64,000 nt of DNA from Oopsacas minuta (taxonomy: Eukaryota; Animalia; Porifera): positions 186,001 to 250,000 of the forward strand of contig JAKMXF010000166.1 in the NCBI GenBank assembly GCA_024704765.1, written 5' to 3'. Both the position numbers and the translations under genes were made by a program. Below, piece by piece: positions 6,708-38,736 of the stretch (position 1 is the first letter of the stretch; the number at the start of each line of letters is the position of its first letter). The notes beneath the pieces are model-generated. The model did no database searches. It saw nothing but the letters and a program-made list of their open reading frames with translations, and had not been told where the DNA came from.

Positions 6708-7337
<630 letters not shown>

Positions 7338-10232: not shown

Positions 10233-10805
<573 letters not shown>

Positions 10806-12451: not shown

Positions 12452-15400
12452 ATGTTAGGAGATGATAATGCCATGTGTATCAGGGTTACACCATCTGTTC
12501 CCTTACGAATTGAATCTAGTCCTATGCACTCTACATTCCAATCTTACTCTTCTGTTACCATGGCATATGTGGATATTACATGTATTTCAGAGCATAATCA
12601 AACACACGTTTGGTTAGGACACAACTACTCTAAGACTCTATTTTCCGATGACGTCATATTACTGACACAACTATTCTTTGACCCTGTATCATGTCGTCCC
12701 ACTATATTTATGTTCTCTCATAAAACAGTTTATTGGTTTGTATGTACAGAGGATAATCAATGGGATCTAGCTTGGCATTACCCATCTTCACAGCGAGTTT
12801 ATTCTATTTCCACTACATTTGATAGAAACAACGAGACTTATACAATAAATTTATTATTTAGAGATAAACTACACAGAATCACTGGTATCAAAATGCTTGA
12901 TAATAATGTTGTTTTTGATTTTGATAATGCGAAACATCAAGATTTTGTAGTTACTCGCTCAACGAAAATTGTTGATATATTGAATATGTGTTGTCTAGAA
13001 GATCAAATCTCTATTTGTACTGTAGCTACCCTATCACTTCATAATTTGACAGGTGACAGTAGTATATCCACTTGTTATACTCCTAATCAGGATATATGTA
13101 TTAAATATTGCATGTTTGTTACGGAGATAGGATTGATAATCCTTCTGACTCAAACTGGGGAAATTCAGTTTATTGATTCATACACTTTAACTTTGTGTGA
13201 TGAATGGATTAATGAGAAATATAATTCAATCAGTCTCTTGGATGATGAAGAGCTATACTATCTAGTTTGTCATGAAGCTAATATTCATGAATTAAGAGTA
13301 ATAAGCCTAAGTAATTTGGAAACAGTTGCTGCATGTTCTTTGCCGGATATTTCTACTTTTCTAGTAAGTTCGAATTCTTCAGATCAATTCTGTTATTATT
13401 CCTTTGATAATGATTCAGTTTTGACGTTATATCACTGTCGTTTAGAATTCGTTTCTAAAGAAGTTGACCTTGAGAAAACTATGGTTAATTTTTCTTTAAT
13501 GCAAGCCTGTATGGACCATGGATTCGACTGGGTTACCGAGATAGTAGACAATATCAATGATTCTAAATTCCAAACTGCTTGCTTTCTTCTATGGAAACAT
13601 TACGATAGTATTCAGTATAAAGTAACGGTGAATATATTCATTCTATTTTTGGATAATATACCAAAAATTAACCATCTTGAGGGAGTAATTTTATGGTTAA
13701 AATCATTGCTTTTATTCATTTCTTTACATAATGATTCAAAGAAAAACTTCTTTGCTCAAATGCTTGAATGGACAGAAGGATACATTGTCAGTTTAGAGAA
13801 ACATTTCCCTGAGAAATGGATTCAACTTTCACTCAAATTAGTTCAATTTTTGAATTCTCAAATATATGCTATTGACGCTTGGGAAGCCAACAAACGACTT
13901 GCTCTTATTCAAAACCAAATTCAAGATATTGAAATTGTATTCAACACACTAAATATTCGTCTTTCATTCTCGCGCATCTCTGAATATTCTCTTTCTTCCT
14001 TTTTGCATGAATTATTACGTCACGCACATTCCTCAGAACAAATTCGTTCTCTCTTAACTTCTAAGATAATCTCTATTGTAAATCGTCACGGAGAGAGCTT
14101 AGACAATGTCCTATATAAATACATACGGTCTCTAGATGGGAAGTTGAATCAAGAAATCTATCTAGCTGAGCTATTGGAGTCTAAAGCTATGGCTGTTATT
14201 AGTTTTATCAGTTCAAACGAACTCAAACACGAATCAACTATATTTTTACTGACACACGCGAAACTACCTACCAGCAAAAAGTTAATAGAATTCGCGATTG
14301 AGGTTGAAAACTCAACACGTAGGGATATGCAGCATGAAATTGAATTAACTCGTGTGTTAAGCATACTCAGAGATGTGTCTATTGATATTCCAGCGCTCCA
14401 TTCTCGATCTCGTCACCAAATGTGGGTTATAATACCCTCTTTACAAGCAAATACTCAATCCACTGAACGAATTACAACAATTGCAAAATATGGAGATATT
14501 TCTGACCATATACTAGCGTACATATTACATTCTTCTCAATTACTATCTCTTTCATTTGAAGAGGATCCTTATTCCAAATTATGCGATCTACTACCACTCG
14601 TTTTACAAGCTCTAATAAACGCGGAAAATAATTTTGCTGAATCTGAATTACTACTTGATTTCCTTAATAAATTACGTCATCATTACGTATCACAACATAA
14701 TATAGTGACAAACGCTTCTAAGTTTTACACTAATTATTTTGATGATCTTTTCAAAGGTGTATACTTATACCATCATTTAAAAGATTTTGAAAACGGAAGA
14801 TCGATCCCATTTCTGATTAATTCTCAATCAAATACTGACATTTATTCCCAAATAATTCCACAAATTCCTAACTTAGAAGAGAATGAAACATGTTTAACTA
14901 GTCCATTAAAGAAAATGAAACTAAGTTCTGATCCAATGTCCATTTTCAAGAACTTGTATCAATTGAGTAAATTCCATCGTCGACAAATCTGGGATGACTT
15001 AATGACGTCAGCTCTTGAGCTGTCAAACATCACATGTGCTATTCTACTTATTAAATTACGAATTCAGAAAGAAGGTTTTGAAAGCGAAGAATCAATTTCA
15101 ATTTTATTTCCACAAATATTATCAAAATTTCCTCAAATTTTATCTGAATTAGAAGAACCAGTCCATACGTTAACACAATTGGAGCAGATTATATCATCGT
15201 ACATACCAGTTGTTGCTAGGGAAAAGTTCGTCGATTTACAGCAGCTTCTCCTCAAAATACGATTAATAAAAGATATAATGTTTCAATCTGAGTTTGAAAT
15301 AAAACCTAAACTGAATCAACAACAATTGAAGGAATCGCGAAGACTATTCCGTAACCATTCATATCAAGAGAAAGGATACATATTAGACAAATCATCTACT

Positions 15401-26784: not shown

Positions 26785-27544
26785 TATTTCGCTACAGTTT
26801 GAACTTGTATATATTTGTACACTTTTAATATATGTATTTTATTGGGTGATAATCAGTTGGGAATATTTGTGAGATTTTTACTACAGTAGACATATTGAAT
26901 TGTATAGTCTACTACTTGTATGTTAATATCTGTTTTAGATTATTGTAATAATCATAATATTGTTTCTTTACTAGTTGTACTATAAATGTTTTTCGTTCGT
27001 ACATTAATATGTTTCAACATGACCATTTATCAAAGCTACGGCCGCTCAGCATTGGCATGCATTGTCCAAAGATATAGGGGCGATGCATCATAATGATTAT
27101 CCTATACGTACGTACATTTCTGTAAGAATAGGTCAAATACGAATAATACCGATAGTTAGAATAAACCTGTTTCGATTATAAATATAACTATAGTTATAGC
27201 TGAAACTGGTATGGAAGTGTCGCTAAATTTACGAAAACTACAATCATATAAATCTATTAGCATAATTAGGCCAAAGTCTTGGTTTACAAATCCAGAAGTA
27301 TCTAGGAGTCGGTGAATCATTGATTTAACCTGTTTGGGGTTGAAATGCTTAATATTGATCTTTTAGAATTGTTGAATTACAGCTTTGTATCATAAATATA
27401 ATATTTGTAGCTACGTACGTATTTAATATTTTCAGAACATACTTGCTCTAATTGTAATAAAACATAAAGTGTATTCTTACATGTGTGTTACTACTGTTTA
27501 TCTGTTTGATTGAATATTTCTTAATTATTCTGCATAGCTTCATA

Positions 27545-28609
27545 ATGTCCACACAAGACAATACATCTGTGGTCTTGCATAAAATTAAAGATATTCGTCT
27601 CGAACCAAAACCAATCCGAAAGCCAACGAAAGGCCAGGTTCAGATAGCTGTACACTCAGTAGGAATTTGTGGTTCAGATGTACACTATTGGGTAAATGGA
27701 GGTATTGGAGATTTCATAGTAAAATCCCCAATGATTCTAGGTCATGAGACTTCAGGTACAGTTGTAGAGCTAGGTGAGGGAGTAACCAATCTTAAGATTG
27801 GAGATAGAGTAGCAGTAGAACCTGGAGTTCCTTGTTATAAATGTGATCAGTGTATGGATGGGAGATATAACTTGTGTCCTGATGTGTTTTTCTGTGCCAC
27901 TCCCCCAGACGATGGCACTCTAACCAGACTGTATTGTCATGATGCTAATTTCTGCTTCAAACTTCCTGACAATATGACGTATGAAGAAGGAGCGTTACTA
28001 GAACCATTGAGTGTAGGAGTACATGCTTGTCGTAGAGCAGAAGTGACAGGAGGAGACACTATTCTCATCTGTGGAGCTGGTCCCATAGGTCTAGTTACCT
28101 TGTTGACTGCTCGTGCTTTTGGCGCTACCAACATAGCTATTACTGACATCAATGCTAAACGACTGGAGTTTGCTAAAACTCTTGGAGTTAATCACACAAT
28201 ACTGGTAGATGGAGATCCTCAATCTACTGCTAAGCGTGCTATCGAATTGTTGGGGAAGATGCCTGATAAATCTATAGACTGTGTTGCATTTCCTCCCACC
28301 ATCTCCACTGCTATATATGCTACAAAGTCAGGAGGCACCGTCCTGCTGGTGGGTCTAGGACCACCCACTTCTGAGATCCCTATTGTTAACGCGAGCGTAC
28401 GAGAAGTTGACATCAAGGGTGTATTCCGATACAAAGGTTGTTACCAGAAAGCTATGGACATGATTGCAAGAGGGTTGATCAATGTGAAGCCTCTTGTCAC
28501 TCACAGATATGCTATGGAACAGGCATTGGAAGCTTTTGAGATGACAAAATCTGGAGAAGGAATAAAAGTCATGATCAAGTGTGATCCAACTCGTGCACAA
28601 CTACAGTAA
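27545..28609 (+). CDS. SORD: Sorbitol dehydrogenase, copy 1 (canonical active site)
   Basis: GICGSDVHYW, GHE, FFCATPPDDG, GAGPIG, GVFRY; structural-Zn cysteines CYKCDQC...C retained. ATG at 27545. Confidence 0.95.
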   Translation: MSTQDNTSVVLHKIKDIRLEPKPIRKPTKGQVQIAVHSVGICGSDVHYWVNGGIGDFIVKSPMILGHETSGTVVELGEGVTNLKIGDRVAVEPGVPCYKCDQCMDGRYNLCPDVFFCATPPDDGTLTRLYCHDANFCFKLPDNMTYEEGALLEPLSVGVHACRRAEVTGGDTILICGAGPIGLVTLLTARAFGATNIAITDINAKRLEFAKTLGVNHTILVDGDPQSTAKRAIELLGKMPDKSIDCVAFPPTISTAIYATKSGGTVLLVGLGPPTSEIPIVNASVREVDIKGVFRYKGCYQKAMDMIARGLINVKPLVTHRYAMEQALEAFEMTKSGEGIKVMIKCDPTRAQLQ

Positions 28610-28857
28610 ATGAATTAGTTTCTTTCTTACTTATTGACAATCTTATTTTCACTTCTCTATTATCCCGTAATTCTATTCTCATTTCGAATTATAACATTCA
28701 GTAAATTATAGATTTTTCGCATTTGTTGTATTCACACCTATAGGCTAAATATAATGGAAACTTTCGAATGTATTAATCACTATTTGGGGGTTGTTCACTG
28801 ATCGGCAAACAATCCCAACCCATTCATTTTGTACCCATAAATGTGAAATACAAGAAT

Positions 28858-29919
28858 ATGTTACAAGACAACTCATCTGTGATCCTACACAAAATCAATG
28901 ATATTCGTCTGGAACAGAAACCAATTCCTAAACTAACCAAAGGTCATGTTAAGATAGCTGTACACTCAGTAGGAATATGTGGATCAGATATTCATTTCTG
29001 GATACACGGTCGTATCGGTGATTCTATAGTAAAATCCCCAATGATTCTAGGTCATGAGACTTCAGGTACAGTTGTAGAGCTAGGTGAGGGAGTAACCAAT
29101 CTTAAGATTGGAGATAGAGTAGCAGTAGAACCTGGAGTTCCTTGTTATAAATGTGATCAGTGTATGGATGGGAGATATAACTTGTGTCCCAACGTGAATT
29201 TTTGTGGAAATCCGAAAAAAGACGGCACTCTAACCAGACTGTATTGTCATGATGCTAATTTCTGCTTCAAGCTTCTCGACAATATGACGTATGAAGAAGG
29301 AGCGTTACTAGAACCATTGAGTGTAGGAGTACATGCTTGTCGTAGAGCAGAAGTGACAGGAGGAGACACTATTCTCATCTGTGGAGCTGGTCCCATAGGT
29401 CTAGTTACCTTGTTGACTGCTCGTGCTTTTGGCGCTACCAACATAGCTATTACTGACATCAATGCTAAACGACTGGAGTTTGCTAAAACTCTTGGAGTTA
29501 ATCACACAATACTGGTAGATGGAGATCCTCAATCTACTGCTAAGCGTGCTATCGAATTGTTGGGGAAGATGCCTGATAAATCTATAGACTGTGTTGCATT
29601 TCCTCCCACCATCTCCACTGCTATATATGCTACAAAGTCAGGAGGCACCGTCCTGTTGGTGGGACTAGGACCACCCACTTCTGAGATCCCTATTGTTAAC
29701 GCGAGCGTACGAGAAGTTGACATCAAGGGTGTATTCCGATACAAAGGTTGTTACCAGAAAGCTATGGACATGATTGCAAGAGGGTTGATCAATGTGAAGC
29801 CTCTTGTCACTCACAGATATGCTATGGAACAGGCATTGGAAGCTTTTGAGATGACAAAATCTGGAGAAGGAATAAAAGTCATGATCAAGTGTGATCCAAC
29901 TCGTGCACAACTAAAGTGA
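28858..29919 (+). CDS. Sorbitol dehydrogenase-like polyol dehydrogenase, copy 2 (altered substrate pocket)
   Basis: Nearly identical to copy 1 from 29026 onward except NVNFCGNPKKDG; N-terminus GSDIHFWIHGRIGDS. ATG at 28858. Confidence 0.92.
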   Translation: MLQDNSSVILHKINDIRLEQKPIPKLTKGHVKIAVHSVGICGSDIHFWIHGRIGDSIVKSPMILGHETSGTVVELGEGVTNLKIGDRVAVEPGVPCYKCDQCMDGRYNLCPNVNFCGNPKKDGTLTRLYCHDANFCFKLLDNMTYEEGALLEPLSVGVHACRRAEVTGGDTILICGAGPIGLVTLLTARAFGATNIAITDINAKRLEFAKTLGVNHTILVDGDPQSTAKRAIELLGKMPDKSIDCVAFPPTISTAIYATKSGGTVLLVGLGPPTSEIPIVNASVREVDIKGVFRYKGCYQKAMDMIARGLINVKPLVTHRYAMEQALEAFEMTKSGEGIKVMIKCDPTRAQLK

Positions 29920-31753: not shown

Positions 31754-32077
31754 TTTCAGTTTCATCTCAATCAAAAATTAATTAATACAGTATTATTTGG
31801 AATTAGTTGTGTTATTATTAAAGAATATTTGGAATGTAATATCTATCCTATTTTCTGTGTGCCTTCAATATTATAGATGAAACAAGTGGTCCAATTGCAA
31901 AAATGTTGAAAAACTTTGCCCTAGTGTATACGTATATTGATTAATAATACATTTTGATATTATAGAAATGATGTATCAAGTAACTCCCTGTAATGCTACC
32001 TTACATTTAAGAGCAAGTATAATATTAGGCTGTATATTATTCTTTGTTAATTTGTATTCAGTAATTGATATCAAAAC

Positions 32078-34525
32078 ATGGCTTATCTACTTGAAGAAAG
32101 TTACCGATCCAATGAGTGGAGCGTCAATAACCCTAGATCCCTATTGATGCCATTTGGTAGTGATTTACATACTTGTCCAATAACCGAGGAAAGTTATGAT
32201 GTTTTACAATCCACAGACGTTGGCACTCCAGATCTTCTTATAGGAACATTGGCACCTTTTGATGATTCATCTAGGTCCGTAGAAGATAGGGACATAACAA
32301 TTAACATTGATCCTGAAGAGCGTATTAGAGGAAAAACAGTAGACAATGAGTATTTTCTGCTAGAAAGTGTTGTACGAGATGAAAAGTTATTATATCCACA
32401 AACTCTGAAAGCCCAGAATTACAGAATTGAGGATATTGCTATCTATGTGCATCATAGTCAGAATTATTTTAATCCGAAACATCATCCAGGATCTAACATA
32501 AGCAAGAAGGCTTATAAGATCCTGTACCATCCCATAATGTACTATGTAGATTGGTTCATAAGTTTCTTTCTACTTCTACTCGCTGGTATTGAACATCCTT
32601 TCTATGAACTCTTAGAACCAGATGAATCAAAATTAAAAATCTTTGCAGCTGTGTTAGAATCTTTGATTATTGCATATTTCACATTTGACTTGGGACTTCG
32701 TTTTTTCTGGCTTGGTGTGAAGCGTTATTTGAGACAGAAAATAACATTAGCTCGTTTGATTGGTGTGATATTAATCACTATTGATTTCATATTGGCTCTG
32801 TCAATACCGTGGTATTACCAACATCGTTTCCTGAGAACTTGTCGACCTATCCTCTTTCTAACTTCTCACTTGAATCGAAATATTCGAAATGTTGTGAATC
32901 AACTCCTAAACTCGATTCGTCGTATCCTTGATCTCTATGTTCTGTACTTAGTTTTCGTTGTAATATTTTCATTATTGGCATACAATATACTAGGGGAAAT
33001 CGATGTAGCAAATTATGGAACATTCCCTGATAGCTTCATTACAATGTTCGCACTATCAACCACTGTTAATTATCCTGACGTAATGCTACCCGCCTTAGAA
33101 AATTGTCTTTTATATTTCCTTCTATTCTTCCCTTTCCTCTCATTTGGGATTTATGTTCTTACGAATCTTCTGCTTGCGATTGTGAAAGATCATTTTAGCA
33201 GACTCGAAAAGGAGAAATTAAAACAGCTGCTGGAGTTCCGTAGAGTTTCCCTGCTTCGCGCGTTCCACTTAGGAACCCAGCTCTCTGCTTCAGAATGGGA
33301 CTATTCCCTATTTAGGCGTGTTATGTTATCTATATCTAAAACGATATCTGAGAAACAATGCCTACTCATGTTTAAAGTTCTTGATCGTCATGGCAATCAA
33401 AAGTTAAGTTGGAAGGAATTTAAACAGTTGTCGAATGTCATGTCAATGAGGTGGCGTAGATCTGACTTAACAAATATCAACAAAATGTGGCATAGAATGA
33501 TACCGATCAGACTTCTAAGGAGGGTTTCGGAATACACTTACGTCTTGGTTTCATCATTCATCTTTAAATTCATAATAAACCTTGTGATTTTAACCAACTG
33601 TGCGTTGCTAATTATTGAGACTTTAGTATATGACACTCCACAACAGCCAGGATCAGATAATGGATTTAGATATGAGAGTGCTTTTTTCCTCCCAATCTAT
33701 TTCCTAGAGTTCTGTTTACAGATTGTTGGTTTTGGCCCATTTTACTATTTCACTCATGGATGGCATGTATTCGATTTTATCATCTTGTTTTCCTCTATTA
33801 TTGCATCAATTTCTGGATATACTTACATAATAGTGCTAAGAACATTCCGTCTTCTGAGAGTACTGAAAGCTAAAAACAGCTTTAGGCGGATTTTCACGAT
33901 TATATCTTTGAGTATTCCTAAACTAATGCGATTCGTTATATCAATATGTCTTGCATTCTACGTGTATGCTATTCTTGGTATGTGTTTATATGCTGGTAAA
34001 TTGAGGGATTGTAGCTTTAATGAATTGGATCTTCCTGAGTACAACCCTGATTGTGGAGAGGAGTACGACTATCAAAAGAATCCACCAGACGGTTTGTATT
34101 ATTTAGTGAATTTCAATGACATCTTACATTCATTTATAACTTTATTCATATTAATGATTGTTAATAACTGGCAAGTGGTGGCGAAGGGGTATATCGCGAT
34201 TACAGGCACTTATAGTTATTTATTTTTCATTTTCTTTTATCTATTTGTGGTTTTGGTTATCACGAATGTAACTGCGGCTTTTGTTCTCGATCTATATGAT
34301 AGTATATCCACTACATTGGGTAAATCATTCACTGTACGTGTAAGCTTGAGTAAGAAGGTTTTGGAGAGATTTGGAATACATGAGAACATTGAAGGAGATG
34401 AAGTGGAGTATGTGGGTAGGAGGAAATTGGGTCAATTCGATTCTCTTATGCTACTCTATCAATCTGAAGATTGGGTGCAGAAGGATGAAATATCCCCTAT
34501 CGGAGACTTTTATATTCAACACTGA
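32078..34525 (+). CDS. Two-pore channel (TPC), copy 1, 815 aa
   Basis: Two 6-TM repeats; filter motifs TTVNYPDVM and IVNNW; EF-hand-like linker (LDRHGNQKLSWKEF); charged IIS4 LRTFRLLRVLK. Confidence 0.93.
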   Translation: MAYLLEESYRSNEWSVNNPRSLLMPFGSDLHTCPITEESYDVLQSTDVGTPDLLIGTLAPFDDSSRSVEDRDITINIDPEERIRGKTVDNEYFLLESVVRDEKLLYPQTLKAQNYRIEDIAIYVHHSQNYFNPKHHPGSNISKKAYKILYHPIMYYVDWFISFFLLLLAGIEHPFYELLEPDESKLKIFAAVLESLIIAYFTFDLGLRFFWLGVKRYLRQKITLARLIGVILITIDFILALSIPWYYQHRFLRTCRPILFLTSHLNRNIRNVVNQLLNSIRRILDLYVLYLVFVVIFSLLAYNILGEIDVANYGTFPDSFITMFALSTTVNYPDVMLPALENCLLYFLLFFPFLSFGIYVLTNLLLAIVKDHFSRLEKEKLKQLLEFRRVSLLRAFHLGTQLSASEWDYSLFRRVMLSISKTISEKQCLLMFKVLDRHGNQKLSWKEFKQLSNVMSMRWRRSDLTNINKMWHRMIPIRLLRRVSEYTYVLVSSFIFKFIINLVILTNCALLIIETLVYDTPQQPGSDNGFRYESAFFLPIYFLEFCLQIVGFGPFYYFTHGWHVFDFIILFSSIIASISGYTYIIVLRTFRLLRVLKAKNSFRRIFTIISLSIPKLMRFVISICLAFYVYAILGMCLYAGKLRDCSFNELDLPEYNPDCGEEYDYQKNPPDGLYYLVNFNDILHSFITLFILMIVNNWQVVAKGYIAITGTYSYLFFIFFYLFVVLVITNVTAAFVLDLYDSISTTLGKSFTVRVSLSKKVLERFGIHENIEGDEVEYVGRRKLGQFDSLMLLYQSEDWVQKDEISPIGDFYIQH

Positions 34526-34939
34526 TATCGCGGAATTTGCATGCTATTTTTCAAACCGAACTTTTTCTTCGAAGTTTTATACTAATCTTATGAATTATAC
34601 TTTTATTGATACGTATTGGATATTTTGTGATATTTGTATATACTCAGATCATAATTGTTAATATTGTATTGAATTTGATGTTTACTTGTTTTCTTATTTT
34701 ATCTACGTTTTATTTAATAAGTTTCGTTAATAGCAGGATGGAATGTTTCAGTTTTTCTATACAGGCCGCTAAAAGGCTGTCGATTCAGTGTTGTGTATAT
34801 TTAACACTAGAGTTATCTCTCTATACATAGCTGCTACCTGTAATAACTACGTCCATCTTGACCACTACGTTATTGCGGTTGTTAATATTCCACTGTGGAT
34901 AATTACGTTAATTTTACATTTGTAGTTATAAATACTTGC

Positions 34940-35245
34940 ATGGCTTACAGACTTCTGTTACGTGACATAACTAATATAAAGCCAATATATTCTCCAATTC
35001 TACCAGCTTTACAAACCAAATTTTACTTCTCTGAAAAATCGGTTATTCCACTCACAGAAACAATCACACTAGATACTCCTGTATCCCTTAAGGAGTTAAA
35101 TGGTTTGTCACCTAACCACGTGTCACGCTATGTTGTCATATCCAAACCTGCTCGTTGTACCATGCAAAGTGGCACAGGAGGGACACATCATTGGTCCAAT
35201 TGCAAGAATGTTGAAAAACTTTGCCCTAGTGTATATGTATATTGA
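34940..35245 (+). pseudogene. 3'-truncated NDUFS4 duplicate fused to a novel tail
   Basis: Matches NDUFS4 (38245 onward) up to ...MQSGTGGTHHW, then reads into the duplicated TPC upstream sequence (SNCKNVEKLCPSVYVY*). Confidence 0.85.
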
Positions 35246-35382
35246 TTAATAATACATTTTGATATTATAGAAATGATGTATCAAGTAACTCCCTGTGATG
35301 CTACCTTACATTTAAGAGCAAGTATAATATTAGGCTGTATATTATTCTTTGTTAATTTGTATTCAGTAATTGATATCAAAAC

Positions 35383-37830
35383 ATGGCTTATCTACTTGAA
35401 GAAAGTTACCGATCCAATGAGTGGAGCGTCAATAACCCTAGATCCCTATTGATGCCATTTGGTAGTGATTTACATACTTGTCCAATAACCGAGGAAAGTT
35501 ATGATGTTTTACAATCCACAGACGTTGGCACTCCAGATCCTCTTATAGGAACATTGGCACCTTTTGATGATTCATCTAGGTCCGTAGAAGATAGGGACAT
35601 AACAATTAACATTGATCCTGAAGAGCGTATTAGAGGAGAAACAGTAGACAATGAGTATTTTCTGCTAGAAAGTGTTGTACGAGATGAAAAGTTATTATAT
35701 CCACAAACTCTGAAAGCCCAGAATTACAGAATTGAGGATATTGCTATCTATGTGCATCATAGTCAGAATTATTTTAATCCGAAACATCATCCAGGATCTA
35801 ACATAAGCAAGAAGGCTTATAAGATCCTGTACCATCCCATAATGTACTATGTAGATTGGTTCATAAGTTTCTTTCTACTTCTACTCGCTGGTATTGAACA
35901 TCCTTTCTATGAACTCTTAGAACCAGATGAATCAAAATTAAAAATCTTTGCAGCTGTGTTAGAATCTTTGATTATTGCATATTTCACATTTGACTTGGGA
36001 CTTCGTTTTTTCTGGCTTGGTGTGAAGCGTTATTTGAGACAGAAAATAACATTAGCTCGTTTGATTGGTGTGATATTAATCACTATTGATTTCATATTGG
36101 CTCTGTCAATACCGTGGTATTACCAACATCGTTTCCTGAGAACTTGTCGACCTATCCTCTTTCTAACTTCTCACTTGAATCGAAATATTCGAAATGTTGT
36201 GAATCAACTCCTAAACTCGATTCGTCGTATCCTTGATCTCTATGTTCTGTACTTAGTTTTCGTTGTAATATTTTCATTATTGGCATACAATATACTAGGG
36301 GAAATCGATGTAGCAAATTATGGAACATTCCCTGATAGCTTCATTACAATGTTCGCACTATCAACCACTGTTAATTATCCTGACGTAATGCTACCCGCCT
36401 TAGAAAATTGTCTTTTATATTTCCTTCTATTCTTCCCTTTCCTCTCATTTGGGATTTATGTTCTTACGAATCTTCTGCTTGCGATTGTGAAAGATCATTT
36501 TAGCAGACTCGAAAAGGAGAAATTAAAACAGCTGCTGGAGTTCCGTAGAGTTTCCCTGCTTCGCGCGTTCCACTTAGGAACCCAGCTCTCTGCTTCAGAA
36601 TGGGACTATTCCCTATTTAGGCGTGTTATGTTATCTATATCTAAAACGATATCTGAGAAACAATGCCTACTCATGTTTAAAGTTCTTGATCGTCATGGCA
36701 ATCAAAAGTTAAGTTGGAAGGAATTTAAACAGTTGTCGAATGTCATGTCAATGAGGTGGCGTAGATCTGACTTAACAAATATCAACAAAATGTGGCATAG
36801 AATGATACCGATCAGACTTCTAAGGAGGGTTTCGGAATACACTTACGTCTTGGTTTCATCATTCATCTTTAAATTCATAATAAACCTTGTGATTTTAACC
36901 AACTGTGCGTTGCTAATTATTGAGACTTTAGTATATAACACTCCACAACATTCAGATTCAGAGAGTGGATTTATATACGAGGGTGCTTTTTTCCTCCCAA
37001 TCTATTTCCTAGAGTTCTGTTTACAGATTGTTGGTTTTGGTCCATTTTACTATTTCACTCATGGATGGCATGTATTCGATTTTATCATCTTGTTTTCCTC
37101 TATTATTGCATCAGGATTTGGATTGACTTACATAACAGTGCTGAGAACATTCCGTCTTCTAAGAGTACTGAAAGCTAAAAACAGCTTTAGGCGGATTTTC
37201 ACGATTATATCTTTGAGTATTCCTAAACTAATGCGATTCGTTATATCAATATGTCTTGCATTCTACGTGTATGCTATTCTTGGTATGTGTTTATATGCTG
37301 GTAAATTGAGGGATTGTAGCTTTAATGAATTGGATCTTCCTGAGTACAACCCTGATTGTGGAGAGGAGTACGACTATCAAAAGAATCCACCAGACGGTTT
37401 GTATTATTTAGTGAATTTCAATGACATCTTACATTCATTTATAACTTTATTCATATTAATGATTGTTAATAACTGGCAAGTGGTGGCGAAGGGGTATATC
37501 GCGATTACAGGCACTTATAGTTATTTATTTTTCATTTTCTTTTATCTATTTGTGGTTTTGGTTATCACGAATGTAACTGCGGCTTTTGTTCTCGATCTAT
37601 ATGATAGTATATCCACTACATTGGGTAAATCATTCACTGTACGTGTAAGCTTGAGTAAGAAGGTTTTGGAGAGATTTGGAATACATGAGAACATTGAAGG
37701 AGATGAAGTGGAGTATGTGGGTAGGAGGAAATTGGGTCAATTCGATTCTCTTATGCTACTCTATCAATCTGAAGATTGGGTGCAGGAGGATGAAATATCT
37801 CCTATCGGAGACTTTTATATTCAACACTGA
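35383..37830 (+). CDS. Two-pore channel (TPC), copy 2, 815 aa
   Basis: As copy 1, differing mainly in the IIS1-S2 and IIS3-S4 loops. Confidence 0.93.
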   Translation: MAYLLEESYRSNEWSVNNPRSLLMPFGSDLHTCPITEESYDVLQSTDVGTPDPLIGTLAPFDDSSRSVEDRDITINIDPEERIRGETVDNEYFLLESVVRDEKLLYPQTLKAQNYRIEDIAIYVHHSQNYFNPKHHPGSNISKKAYKILYHPIMYYVDWFISFFLLLLAGIEHPFYELLEPDESKLKIFAAVLESLIIAYFTFDLGLRFFWLGVKRYLRQKITLARLIGVILITIDFILALSIPWYYQHRFLRTCRPILFLTSHLNRNIRNVVNQLLNSIRRILDLYVLYLVFVVIFSLLAYNILGEIDVANYGTFPDSFITMFALSTTVNYPDVMLPALENCLLYFLLFFPFLSFGIYVLTNLLLAIVKDHFSRLEKEKLKQLLEFRRVSLLRAFHLGTQLSASEWDYSLFRRVMLSISKTISEKQCLLMFKVLDRHGNQKLSWKEFKQLSNVMSMRWRRSDLTNINKMWHRMIPIRLLRRVSEYTYVLVSSFIFKFIINLVILTNCALLIIETLVYNTPQHSDSESGFIYEGAFFLPIYFLEFCLQIVGFGPFYYFTHGWHVFDFIILFSSIIASGFGLTYITVLRTFRLLRVLKAKNSFRRIFTIISLSIPKLMRFVISICLAFYVYAILGMCLYAGKLRDCSFNELDLPEYNPDCGEEYDYQKNPPDGLYYLVNFNDILHSFITLFILMIVNNWQVVAKGYIAITGTYSYLFFIFFYLFVVLVITNVTAAFVLDLYDSISTTLGKSFTVRVSLSKKVLERFGIHENIEGDEVEYVGRRKLGQFDSLMLLYQSEDWVQEDEISPIGDFYIQH

Positions 37831-38244
37831 TATCGCGGAATTTGCATGCTATTTTTCAAACCGAACTTTTTCTTCGAAGTTTTATACTAATCTTATGAAT
37901 TATACTTTTATTGATACGTATTGGATATTTTGTGATATTTGTATATACTCAGATCATAATTGTTAATATTGTATTGAATTTGATGTTTACTTGTTTTCTT
38001 ATTTTATCTACGTTTTATTTAATAAGTTTCGTTAATAGCAGGATGGAATGTTTCAGTTTTTCTATACAGGCCGCTAAAAGGCTGTCGATTCAGTGTTGTG
38101 TATATTTAACACTAGAGTTATCTCTCTATACATAGCTGCTACCTGTAATAACTACGTCCATCTTGACCACTACGTTATTGCGGTTGTTAATATTCCACTG
38201 TGGATAATTACGTTAATTTTACATTTGTAGTTATAAATACTTGC

Positions 38245-38736
38245 ATGGCTTACAGACTTCTGTTGCGTAACATAACTAATATAAAGCCAATATATTCTCC
38301 AATTCTACCAGCTTTACAAACCAAATTTTACTTCTCTGAAAAATCGGTTATTCCACTCACAGAAACAATCACACTAGATACTCCTGTATCCCTTAAGGAG
38401 TTAAATGGTTTGCCACCTAACCACGTGTCACGCTATGTTGTCATATCCAAACCTGCTCGTTGTACCATGCAAAGTGGTACAGAAGGGACACATAATTGGA
38501 GGATAGAATTTGAGACACAACAGAGATGGGAGAATCCTGTTATGGGCTGGGCATCTACTGGGGATCCGTTATCTAACATGGTATTAGATTTCTCTAGTAA
38601 AGAGGCTGCTATGAATTTCGCTGTTGAGAATGGTTGGAAGTATAAAGTTAAAGAACCAGCTGTAGTTCTCCCAAGAAAGAAGTCATATGCTGCTAACTTC
38701 TCTTGGAACAAGAAAACTCGTGTTACGAATAAATGA
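38245..38736 (+). CDS. NDUFS4: NADH:ubiquinone oxidoreductase subunit S4
   Basis: ISKPARCTMQSG...W..EF....RWENPVMGWASTGDPLSNMVLDFSSKEAA..FA..NGW.Y...KKSYAANFSWNK. ATG at 38245. Confidence 0.96.
   Translation: MAYRLLLRNITNIKPIYSPILPALQTKFYFSEKSVIPLTETITLDTPVSLKELNGLPPNHVSRYVVISKPARCTMQSGTEGTHNWRIEFETQQRWENPVMGWASTGDPLSNMVLDFSSKEAAMNFAVENGWKYKVKEPAVVLPRKKSYAANFSWNKKTRVTNK

Follow-up and report, generated by a model that had tools for sequence, protein, structure and literature searches.

This report concerns two genes for two-pore channels (TPCs) of the TPC1-like type in the sponge Oopsacas minuta (Hexactinellida), which lie in tandem on the forward strand of a 64,000-nucleotide stretch of contig JAKMXF010000166.1 (NCBI GCA_024704765.1), hereafter the window, whose coordinates are used throughout. 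Copy 1 is an intronless open reading frame (ORF) of 815 amino acids at 32078-34525 (+), assigned by Pfam and by its match to mouse TPC1, and copy 2, an intact gene of the same length at 35383-37830 (+), was recognized both as an ORF and as a gene call that is present in a public collection. Both exact proteins are encoded on this contig, and JAKMXF is the accession prefix of the O. minuta genome project (PMC10280926). Corrected PacBio continuous long reads (CLR) and Illumina reads from wild-population tissue were combined into the hybrid assembly with SPAdes, SSPACE, Pilon and GapFiller (PMC10280926). Table S17 of the genome paper lists two consecutive tags, LOD99_1634 and LOD99_1635, each named 'Two-pore channel 1', and both were top matches to CaV and NaV profiles in the search made there (PMC10280926). 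Judging from the names and the consecutive tags rather than from sequence matching, these two entries are probably the two copies described here.

Both genes appear, from their alignments, to encode intact TPC1-like channels with identical pore, S4 and dimer-forming parts. Pfam found the Ion_trans domain in two stretches of each protein (E = 1.8e-60), corresponding to two six-transmembrane (6-TM) domains, and the best solved relative in a HMMER alignment is mouse TPC1 (6c96, E = 2.7e-69, residues 117-740), which is ahead of TPC3 (3.8e-46), AtTPC1 (~1e-31) and TPC2 (1.4e-24). With mouse TPC1 (6c96/6c9a) the sponge pair shares the two Shaker-like 6-TM repeats, between which lies a putatively EF-hand-like linker, the filter I pattern TTxN(F/Y)PD (TTVNYPD, against TTANFPD in the mouse), the VNNW of filter II (IVNNW, against VVNNW in the mouse), and arginines at every third residue of the fourth helix of the second repeat (IIS4); about one-third of the residues are identical, as judged by eye from the alignment. 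The inter-repeat linker aligns with that of mouse TPC1, its EF-hand matches being weak (EF-hand_8, E = 0.0017; EF-hand_7, E = 0.0071; both below the Pfam cut-offs), and mouse TPC1 is the sole match in the PDB for the segment from the linker to IIS2. Unlike the mouse channel, the sponge proteins have an additional arginine in IIS4 at the position of a mouse Gln and a very short IIS3-S4 linker, and their gene is intronless and forms a tandem converting pair. Neither filter differs between the copies, nor does the IIS4 segment VLRTFRLLRVLK, in which the charges R588, R591, R594 and K597 are the same in both; the first-pass annotation, made from the sequence of the window, had already described the filters and the S4 arginines as unchanged, and the alignment bears this out.

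The pair arose within a head-to-tail repeat, which self-BLAST aligns as 31887-35194 against 35192-38499 over 3308 nt with 99.0% identity, 33 mismatches and no gaps. When the boundaries are followed base by base, duplication unit 1 (31887-35191, +, 3305 nt) comprises the 191 nt that precede the TPC start codon, TPC copy 1, a spacer and a 5' fragment of NDUFS4 that ends at codon 85, and unit 2 (35192-38499, +) ends within the intact NDUFS4 gene. The junction carries a microhomology of three nucleotides, TGG (35192-35194), which begins unit 2 and is common to the end of unit 1, and the tandem duplication is microhomology-mediated. The non-coding spacer that separates the TPC stop from the NDUFS4 start (34526-34939, +, 414 nt) is 100% identical to its counterpart at 37831-38244. 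The truncated NDUFS4 (34940-35194, +, 85 codons) is a by-product of the duplication; it is still an ATG-started ORF, with about 16 read-through codons beyond the fragment and a stop at 35245, and it differs from the intact gene by 6 nt and 4 amino acids. The intact NDUFS4 at 38245-38736 (+) encodes 163 amino acids and was identified by Pfam (NDUS4, E = 4.7e-35) and by gene call.

The two TPC coding sequences (CDS) differ at 24 nucleotides, 20 of which lie inside one tract of 225 nt; the chance of finding at least 20 of 24 differences in this 9.2% of the CDS is P = 1.4e-17. This divergence tract, at 33632-33856 (+) in copy 1 and 36937-37161 (+) in copy 2, covers codons 519-593, that is, the loop between the first and second helices of the second repeat (IIS1-S2), IIS2-S3, the IIS3-S4 loop and the start of IIS4. 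All 12 of its amino acid changes are in the two loops: eight in IIS1-S2 (codons 519-534; 33632-33679, copy 2: 36937-36984; +), namely D519N, Q523H, P524S, G525D, D527E, N528S, R531I and S534G, and four in IIS3-S4 (codons 578-585; 33809-33832, copy 2: 37114-37137; +), where seven nucleotides are changed, namely I578G, S579F, Y581L and I585T. Three tract codons hold two or three changes apiece, four differ only synonymously (Y532, G553, L587 and L593), and the IIS2-IIS3 helices between the loops have the same protein sequence in both copies. As a result of the IIS1-S2 changes, copy 2 has lost D519 and R531 and gained H523 and D525, so that its loop is more negative by one net charge and carries a titratable histidine. 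The rest of the CDS contributes three amino acid changes (L53P, K86E and K802E) and one synonymous change. The corresponding counts in the first-pass annotation (two TPCs of 815 amino acids, 20 tract differences of which 4 are synonymous, 12 amino acid changes and 3 elsewhere) were all reproduced, the peptide strings that it quoted were all correct on recheck, and its central observation, that the copies' differences are nearly confined to the luminal side of the second voltage-sensing domain (VSD2), is supported by the alignments.

In the alignment with mouse TPC1, the changed residues map to the IIS1-S2 loop with the start of IIS2, and to the IIS3-S4 loop with the start of IIS4. Taken with the standard topology of voltage-sensor domains, this alignment places the changed loops on the predicted extracytosolic (luminal) face of VSD2. 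An AlphaFold2 (AF2) model built from nine sequences, with a mean predicted local distance difference test (pLDDT) score of 45, was used for rough helix limits only, which in this low-confidence model are H494-517, H528-549, H564-579 and H583-595. In TPC1, voltage is sensed by VSD2 (PMC6424560), in agreement with its earlier designation as the functional voltage sensor of TPCs.

The proportions of synonymous and nonsynonymous differences (pS and pN, from Nei-Gojobori (NG86) counts, with Fisher and binomial tests, the counts being too small for a formal test of pN/pS, or omega, above 1) differ sharply between the tract and its surroundings. In the tract, pS is 0.106 and pN is 0.084, whereas in the rest of the TPC CDS they are 0.0021 and 0.0017, so that synonymous divergence in the tract is about 50 times that of the rest (p = 3e-5). 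Such a contrast in silent sites indicates an older history of the tract, and not merely selected amino acid changes on a young background. The non-coding DNA is also stratified: all nine differences outside the TPC CDS sit at the ends of the unit, 191 nt on one side and 255 nt on the other, with 9/446 differences at these edges (~2%) as against 0/414 in the spacer (p = 0.004). The longest uninterrupted match between the units measures 1299 nt (permutation P < 1e-5). Gene conversion classically leaves non-coding DNA that is identical in the interior and diverged at the edges. Purifying selection at the protein level cannot account for identity in non-coding DNA, and the spacer therefore points to homogenization. 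From the excess of silent change in the tract, the edges at ~2% and the identical spacer together, it follows that the low overall divergence of the pair reflects gene conversion and not youth. The TPC pair is thus a gene-conversion mosaic with an old divergence peak, and the earlier description of it as a recently built pair is not supported, since a simply young pair would not combine a tract pS of 0.106 against 0.002, edges at ~2% and an identical spacer.

A stronger conversion mosaic is seen in the adjacent tandem pair of zinc-type alcohol/sorbitol dehydrogenase genes (27485-29919), in which ~600 nt (27985-28584) hold only two differences and adjoin blocks at 27585-27734 and 27885-27934 that are 20-24% diverged. 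Conversion between tandem paralogues is therefore active in this region. The dehydrogenase is also present in two copies at the related locus L001 described below, and in single copy in the other relatives.

Of the related hexactinellid loci compared, L005 and L006 are two haplotigs of one sponge. The gene order of the window is conserved in six other hexactinellid loci and runs SAM-PH-SH2, dehydrogenase, ELP3, TPC, NDUFS4, unknown gene, enolase-like gene, dynein; at L007 the order matches only from the dehydrogenase through the unknown gene, and both ends differ. A single TPC is found in five relatives' loci (L002, L003, L004, L005/L006 and L007). In the tree of the rest of the gene the two O. 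minuta copies group as sisters (Shimodaira-Hasegawa-like approximate likelihood ratio test (SH-aLRT) support of 100), and they do so again in the tract-only tree (98), in which the branch of copy 2 is about five times longer than that of copy 1. In these comparisons the O. minuta duplication is lineage-specific and not common to the other sampled hexactinellids. At L003, a mariner-type transposase gene (12646-13710 of that locus; Pfam Transposase_1 and HTH_32) lies between TPC and NDUFS4, and NDUFS4 itself was called there only as a 64-amino-acid piece.

One of these relatives has a tandem TPC pair of its own. At L001 (an ENA assembly of a related sponge; L001:5772-13566), the tandem duplication comprises TPC and a complete NDUFS4 and has other breakpoints; both NDUFS4 genes are intact, with one difference in ~500 nt, and the TPC copies form a mosaic that is 4% diverged, with an overall pS of 0.055 that is patchy and falls to zero across the first 120 codons. 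This pair is also monophyletic (SH-aLRT 100, and 97 for the tract alone). Grouping of paralogues by species is what concerted evolution would be expected to give, and independent origins with different breakpoints explain it too. An ancient duplication common to O. minuta and L001 is ruled out by the different breakpoints, by the single-copy L003 being sister to L001, and by the pairwise-monophyletic trees. The L001 copies differ at 35 amino acids. Three loops, IS1-S2, IS3-S4 and IIS3-S4, account for 19 of these and luminal pore loops for about five more according to an alignment read by eye; about 28 of the 35 appear, also judged by eye, to be on the luminal face. The sharpest nucleotide peak, 15 differences per 100 nt, is at IIS3-S4, a loop also changed in O. 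minuta, and in the IS1-S2 loop nonsynonymous differences (Nd = 9.8) far outnumber synonymous ones (Sd = 0.2). It is suggestive, from these comparisons, that two independent duplications may have come to differ mainly at the luminal voltage-sensor face.

Amino acid replacement in the O. minuta loops is rapid by the standard of the same loops in relatives. With pN = 0.22 and pS = 0.16 in IIS1-S2 and pN = 0.34 and pS = 0.14 in IIS3-S4, the ratio pN/pS within the pair is 1.4 and 2.4, respectively, as compared with ~0.1-0.5 for these loops between orthologues (p = 0.006, Fisher test of the McDonald-Kreitman-like (MK-like) kind), and 12 of the 24 loop codons are replaced at a local pS of only ~0.1. 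Amino acid change in the loops is thus clearly accelerated, and either relaxed constraint or diversifying selection could be the cause. The L005 and L006 haplotigs encode the same TPC protein (pS 0.004, pN 0), which argues that the voltage-sensor loops are not hypervariable between alleles in that species.

These observations can be accommodated in the following course of events. A microhomology-mediated tandem duplication would have made two co-oriented TPC1-like genes in O. minuta, and gene conversion would then have repeatedly homogenized nearly all of the 3.3-kb unit, coding and non-coding DNA alike. One 225-bp stretch would have escaped homogenization and would now be the oldest part of the pair; within it, IIS2-IIS3 would have been kept while the IIS1-S2 and IIS3-S4 loops were replaced at 12 of 24 positions. 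Selection may have rejected those conversions that erased a useful difference, thereby leaving a narrow divergence peak. The two channels would then have the same pore, gating charges and cytosolic regulation, and their different outer sensor faces might affect voltage dependence, kinetics or sensitivity to luminal or external ions, which would make the pair the counterpart, at the level of whole genes, of the mutually exclusive S3-S4 exons in voltage-gated sodium and calcium (Nav/Cav) channels. Theory expects a narrow divergence peak in converting duplicates where selection acts against homogenization, and such a peak can mark the selected site, as in exon 5 of the red/green opsins (PMC3924837). 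A narrow peak of the type described by Teshima and Innan is present here, with loop P values of 0.05-0.26 against neutrality and p = 0.006 against the omega of orthologues; selection is the cause that we infer for it. Overall, a real converting pair whose peak is held by selection and whose channels differ at the outer face of the voltage sensor is the reading preferred here, and we consider it to have an even chance of being correct.

Several points weigh against this reading. The loop omega is not significantly above 1 (within-loop P = 0.26), the comparison of the loops with tract synonymous sites gives p = 0.046 but was post hoc, and the omega test with both species pooled gives P = 0.11. 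Conservation across seven species is lowest in the four luminal voltage-sensor loops, with 40-57% mean pairwise identity (the cytosolic N-terminus, at 53%, is similar), and for this reason a neutral leftover would also look as if it were confined to loops. Dense mismatches may block conversion without any selection. The L001 parallel is confounded by which parts conversion chanced to erase, and the AF2 model, at a pLDDT of 45, is too poor for placing residues in three dimensions. In addition, silent divergence in the tract (~8-11%) exceeds that of the unit edges (~2%; p = 0.008), which means either that the edges were partly converted or that the tract is of other origin. Finally, the O. minuta assembly is of the older hybrid type.

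Alternatively, the tract may be a neutral relic, missed by conversion or uncrossable because of its mismatches, in two channels that would be functionally equivalent. The loops are after all the most variable segments among orthologues, the tract-wide omega is 0.79, patchy conversion is common in this region, as the dehydrogenase pair demonstrates, and young duplicates are often relaxed, as the L001 pair illustrates with an omega of 0.41 as against ~0.2 between orthologues. However, relaxation would have to raise the loop omega to 3-10 times that of the same loops between orthologues and replace half of the loop residues over so little silent change; the conversions behind at least two younger strata (edges at ~2%, interior at ~0.15%) must all have skipped the tract; and the independent L001 duplication peaks at the same IIS3-S4 loop. 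A neutral relic is, on this sequence evidence, rather unlikely; selection is the reading that we prefer.

It is also conceivable that the duplication is young (~0.2%) and that the copy 2 tract came from an unsampled or lost donor, such as an allele, a pseudogene fragment or an extra array member, or from clustered multi-nucleotide mutation. The long copy 2 branch in the tract tree, the three codons with two or three changes each and the excess of tract synonymous divergence over the unit edges would all fit such an import. The first-pass annotation had suggested a search for a third paralogue as donor. Besides the two copies, the O. minuta protein set contains a single TPC, P0008 (811 amino acids, 55% identity; L010:5001-7436, JAKMXF010000233.1), and it is rejected as donor: in a codon-by-codon alignment, at the 20 differences it matches copy 1 at seven, copy 2 at nine and neither at four, being thus unbiased toward either copy, and its conserved match to the tract is only 23 nt long. 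The protein cluster at 90% identity contains the two copies and nothing else, no further copy of the tract was found in the 64-kb window, and a local template switch is likewise rejected, as only chance 9-10-mers were found. Moreover, the central IIS2-S3 part of the tract shows a single difference in 129 nt, which excludes a distant donor of one continuous tract, and a very young duplication leaves the 2% edges beside an identical spacer unexplained. A young duplication with an imported or mutated patch we therefore regard as improbable. P0008 itself has lysine at both selectivity-filter positions (TKVN and GKSW), and its neighbour is an ankyrin-repeat Ion_trans gene of TRPA-like type.

Lastly, although a hybrid SPAdes/PacBio CLR assembly of wild-population tissue might give rise to an artefact (two alleles threaded in tandem) or capture a copy-number polymorphism, this is very improbable, because alleles threaded in tandem cannot produce a novel junction in which NDUFS4 codon 85 is joined, with a 3-nt microhomology, to a site 191 nt before TPC, next to an NDUFS4 fragment carrying six differences of its own, and because an analogous tandem pair exists in the independent assembly of a related sponge (L001) and the genome paper lists LOD99_1634 and LOD99_1635, which by name would be the two copies.

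A gating or ion-sensing difference between the two TPC copies is plausible by analogy. The main luminal Ca2+ site of AtTPC1 consists of D454, E528 and D240, and the fou2 mutation, D454N, abolishes inhibition (PMC13114498), largely as the first-pass annotation had stated. In AtTPC1 and in natural variants such as Vicia faba TPC1, luminal residues of VSD2 and the pore mouth tune voltage activation and excitability (PMC13114498, PMC10665017). The sponge pair resembles fou2 in having one D/N exchange just after IIS1. Unlike AtTPC1 D454, however, residue 519 is unconserved: the six other hexactinellid orthologues have E, T, L or H at this position, which aligns with a Lys of mouse TPC1, and a conserved acidic equivalent of D454 after IIS1 was found neither in the hexactinellid orthologues nor in mouse TPC1. 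Since residue 519 is not a conserved acidic ligand, the analogy drawn earlier between D454 and the D/N exchange at ETLVYD/N, supposedly one residue away, is weak. How luminal Ca2+ acts on human TPC1 at the molecular level is described as unknown (PMC13114498). It may still be that the copies have different Ca2+, pH or voltage tuning and that they heterodimerize, and both are presumably expressed.

The closest likeness in evolutionary terms is to the catarrhine red/green (L/M) opsins, which, like the sponge pair, are tandem paralogues homogenized by conversion, non-coding DNA included (PMC3924837, PMC3213168). In the opsins the narrow peak covers functionally differing residues and its effect has been measured, whereas in the sponge the functional difference under the narrow peak is inferred and the peak lies in weakly constrained loops. 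In channel terms, the closest likeness is to the alternative S3-S4 exons of Nav/Cav channels (Nav1.1 5N/5A; Drosophila cacophony IS4), in which a small outer-sensor cassette alters gating while the pore is kept (PMC3196094, PMC11828482), and S3-S4 linker variants of Nav channels are known to alter gating (PMC3196094). The sponge cassette takes the form of two whole genes in an intron-poor genome, whereas that of Nav/Cav is generated by splicing; also, two loops (S1-S2 and S3-S4) of one sensor are affected in the sponge, as compared with the S3-S4 region in Nav/Cav.

As for novelty, the family is known, the genes themselves are already annotated, and the evolutionary pattern is of a known kind; a description of the divergence mosaic in this TPC pair was not found in the literature. 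Elsewhere in the window, self-BLAST also returned a 365-nt inverted repeat with 90% identity (6852-7213 against 10291-10655).

Finally, the biological meaning of the pair depends on whether the loop differences matter. If they do not, the pair is simply a conversion mosaic of textbook clarity. If they do, the two genes, alike in pore, S4 charges, linker and tails, would provide channel isoforms without alternative splicing in an intron-poor, early-branching animal with very few voltage-gated cation channels, the O. minuta genome paper having reported no Nav and no obvious Kv genes (PMC10280926). A more far-reaching idea, to which we attach little credence, is that the TPC1-like channels may contribute to the syncytial action potential or to some other depolarization-driven signal, and that hexactinellids may have repeatedly made voltage-sensor cassette variants by duplication and conversion, with selection guarding the outer VSD loops; if this were true, it would represent a splicing-free route to channel isoforms, taken in parallel in at least two lineages. 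The value of the pair is that of a clean natural chimera for VSD2 loop function in an animal TPC1, which, if the loop differences matter, would isolate the role of the S1-S2 and S3-S4 loops in TPC1 gating and luminal ion sensing.

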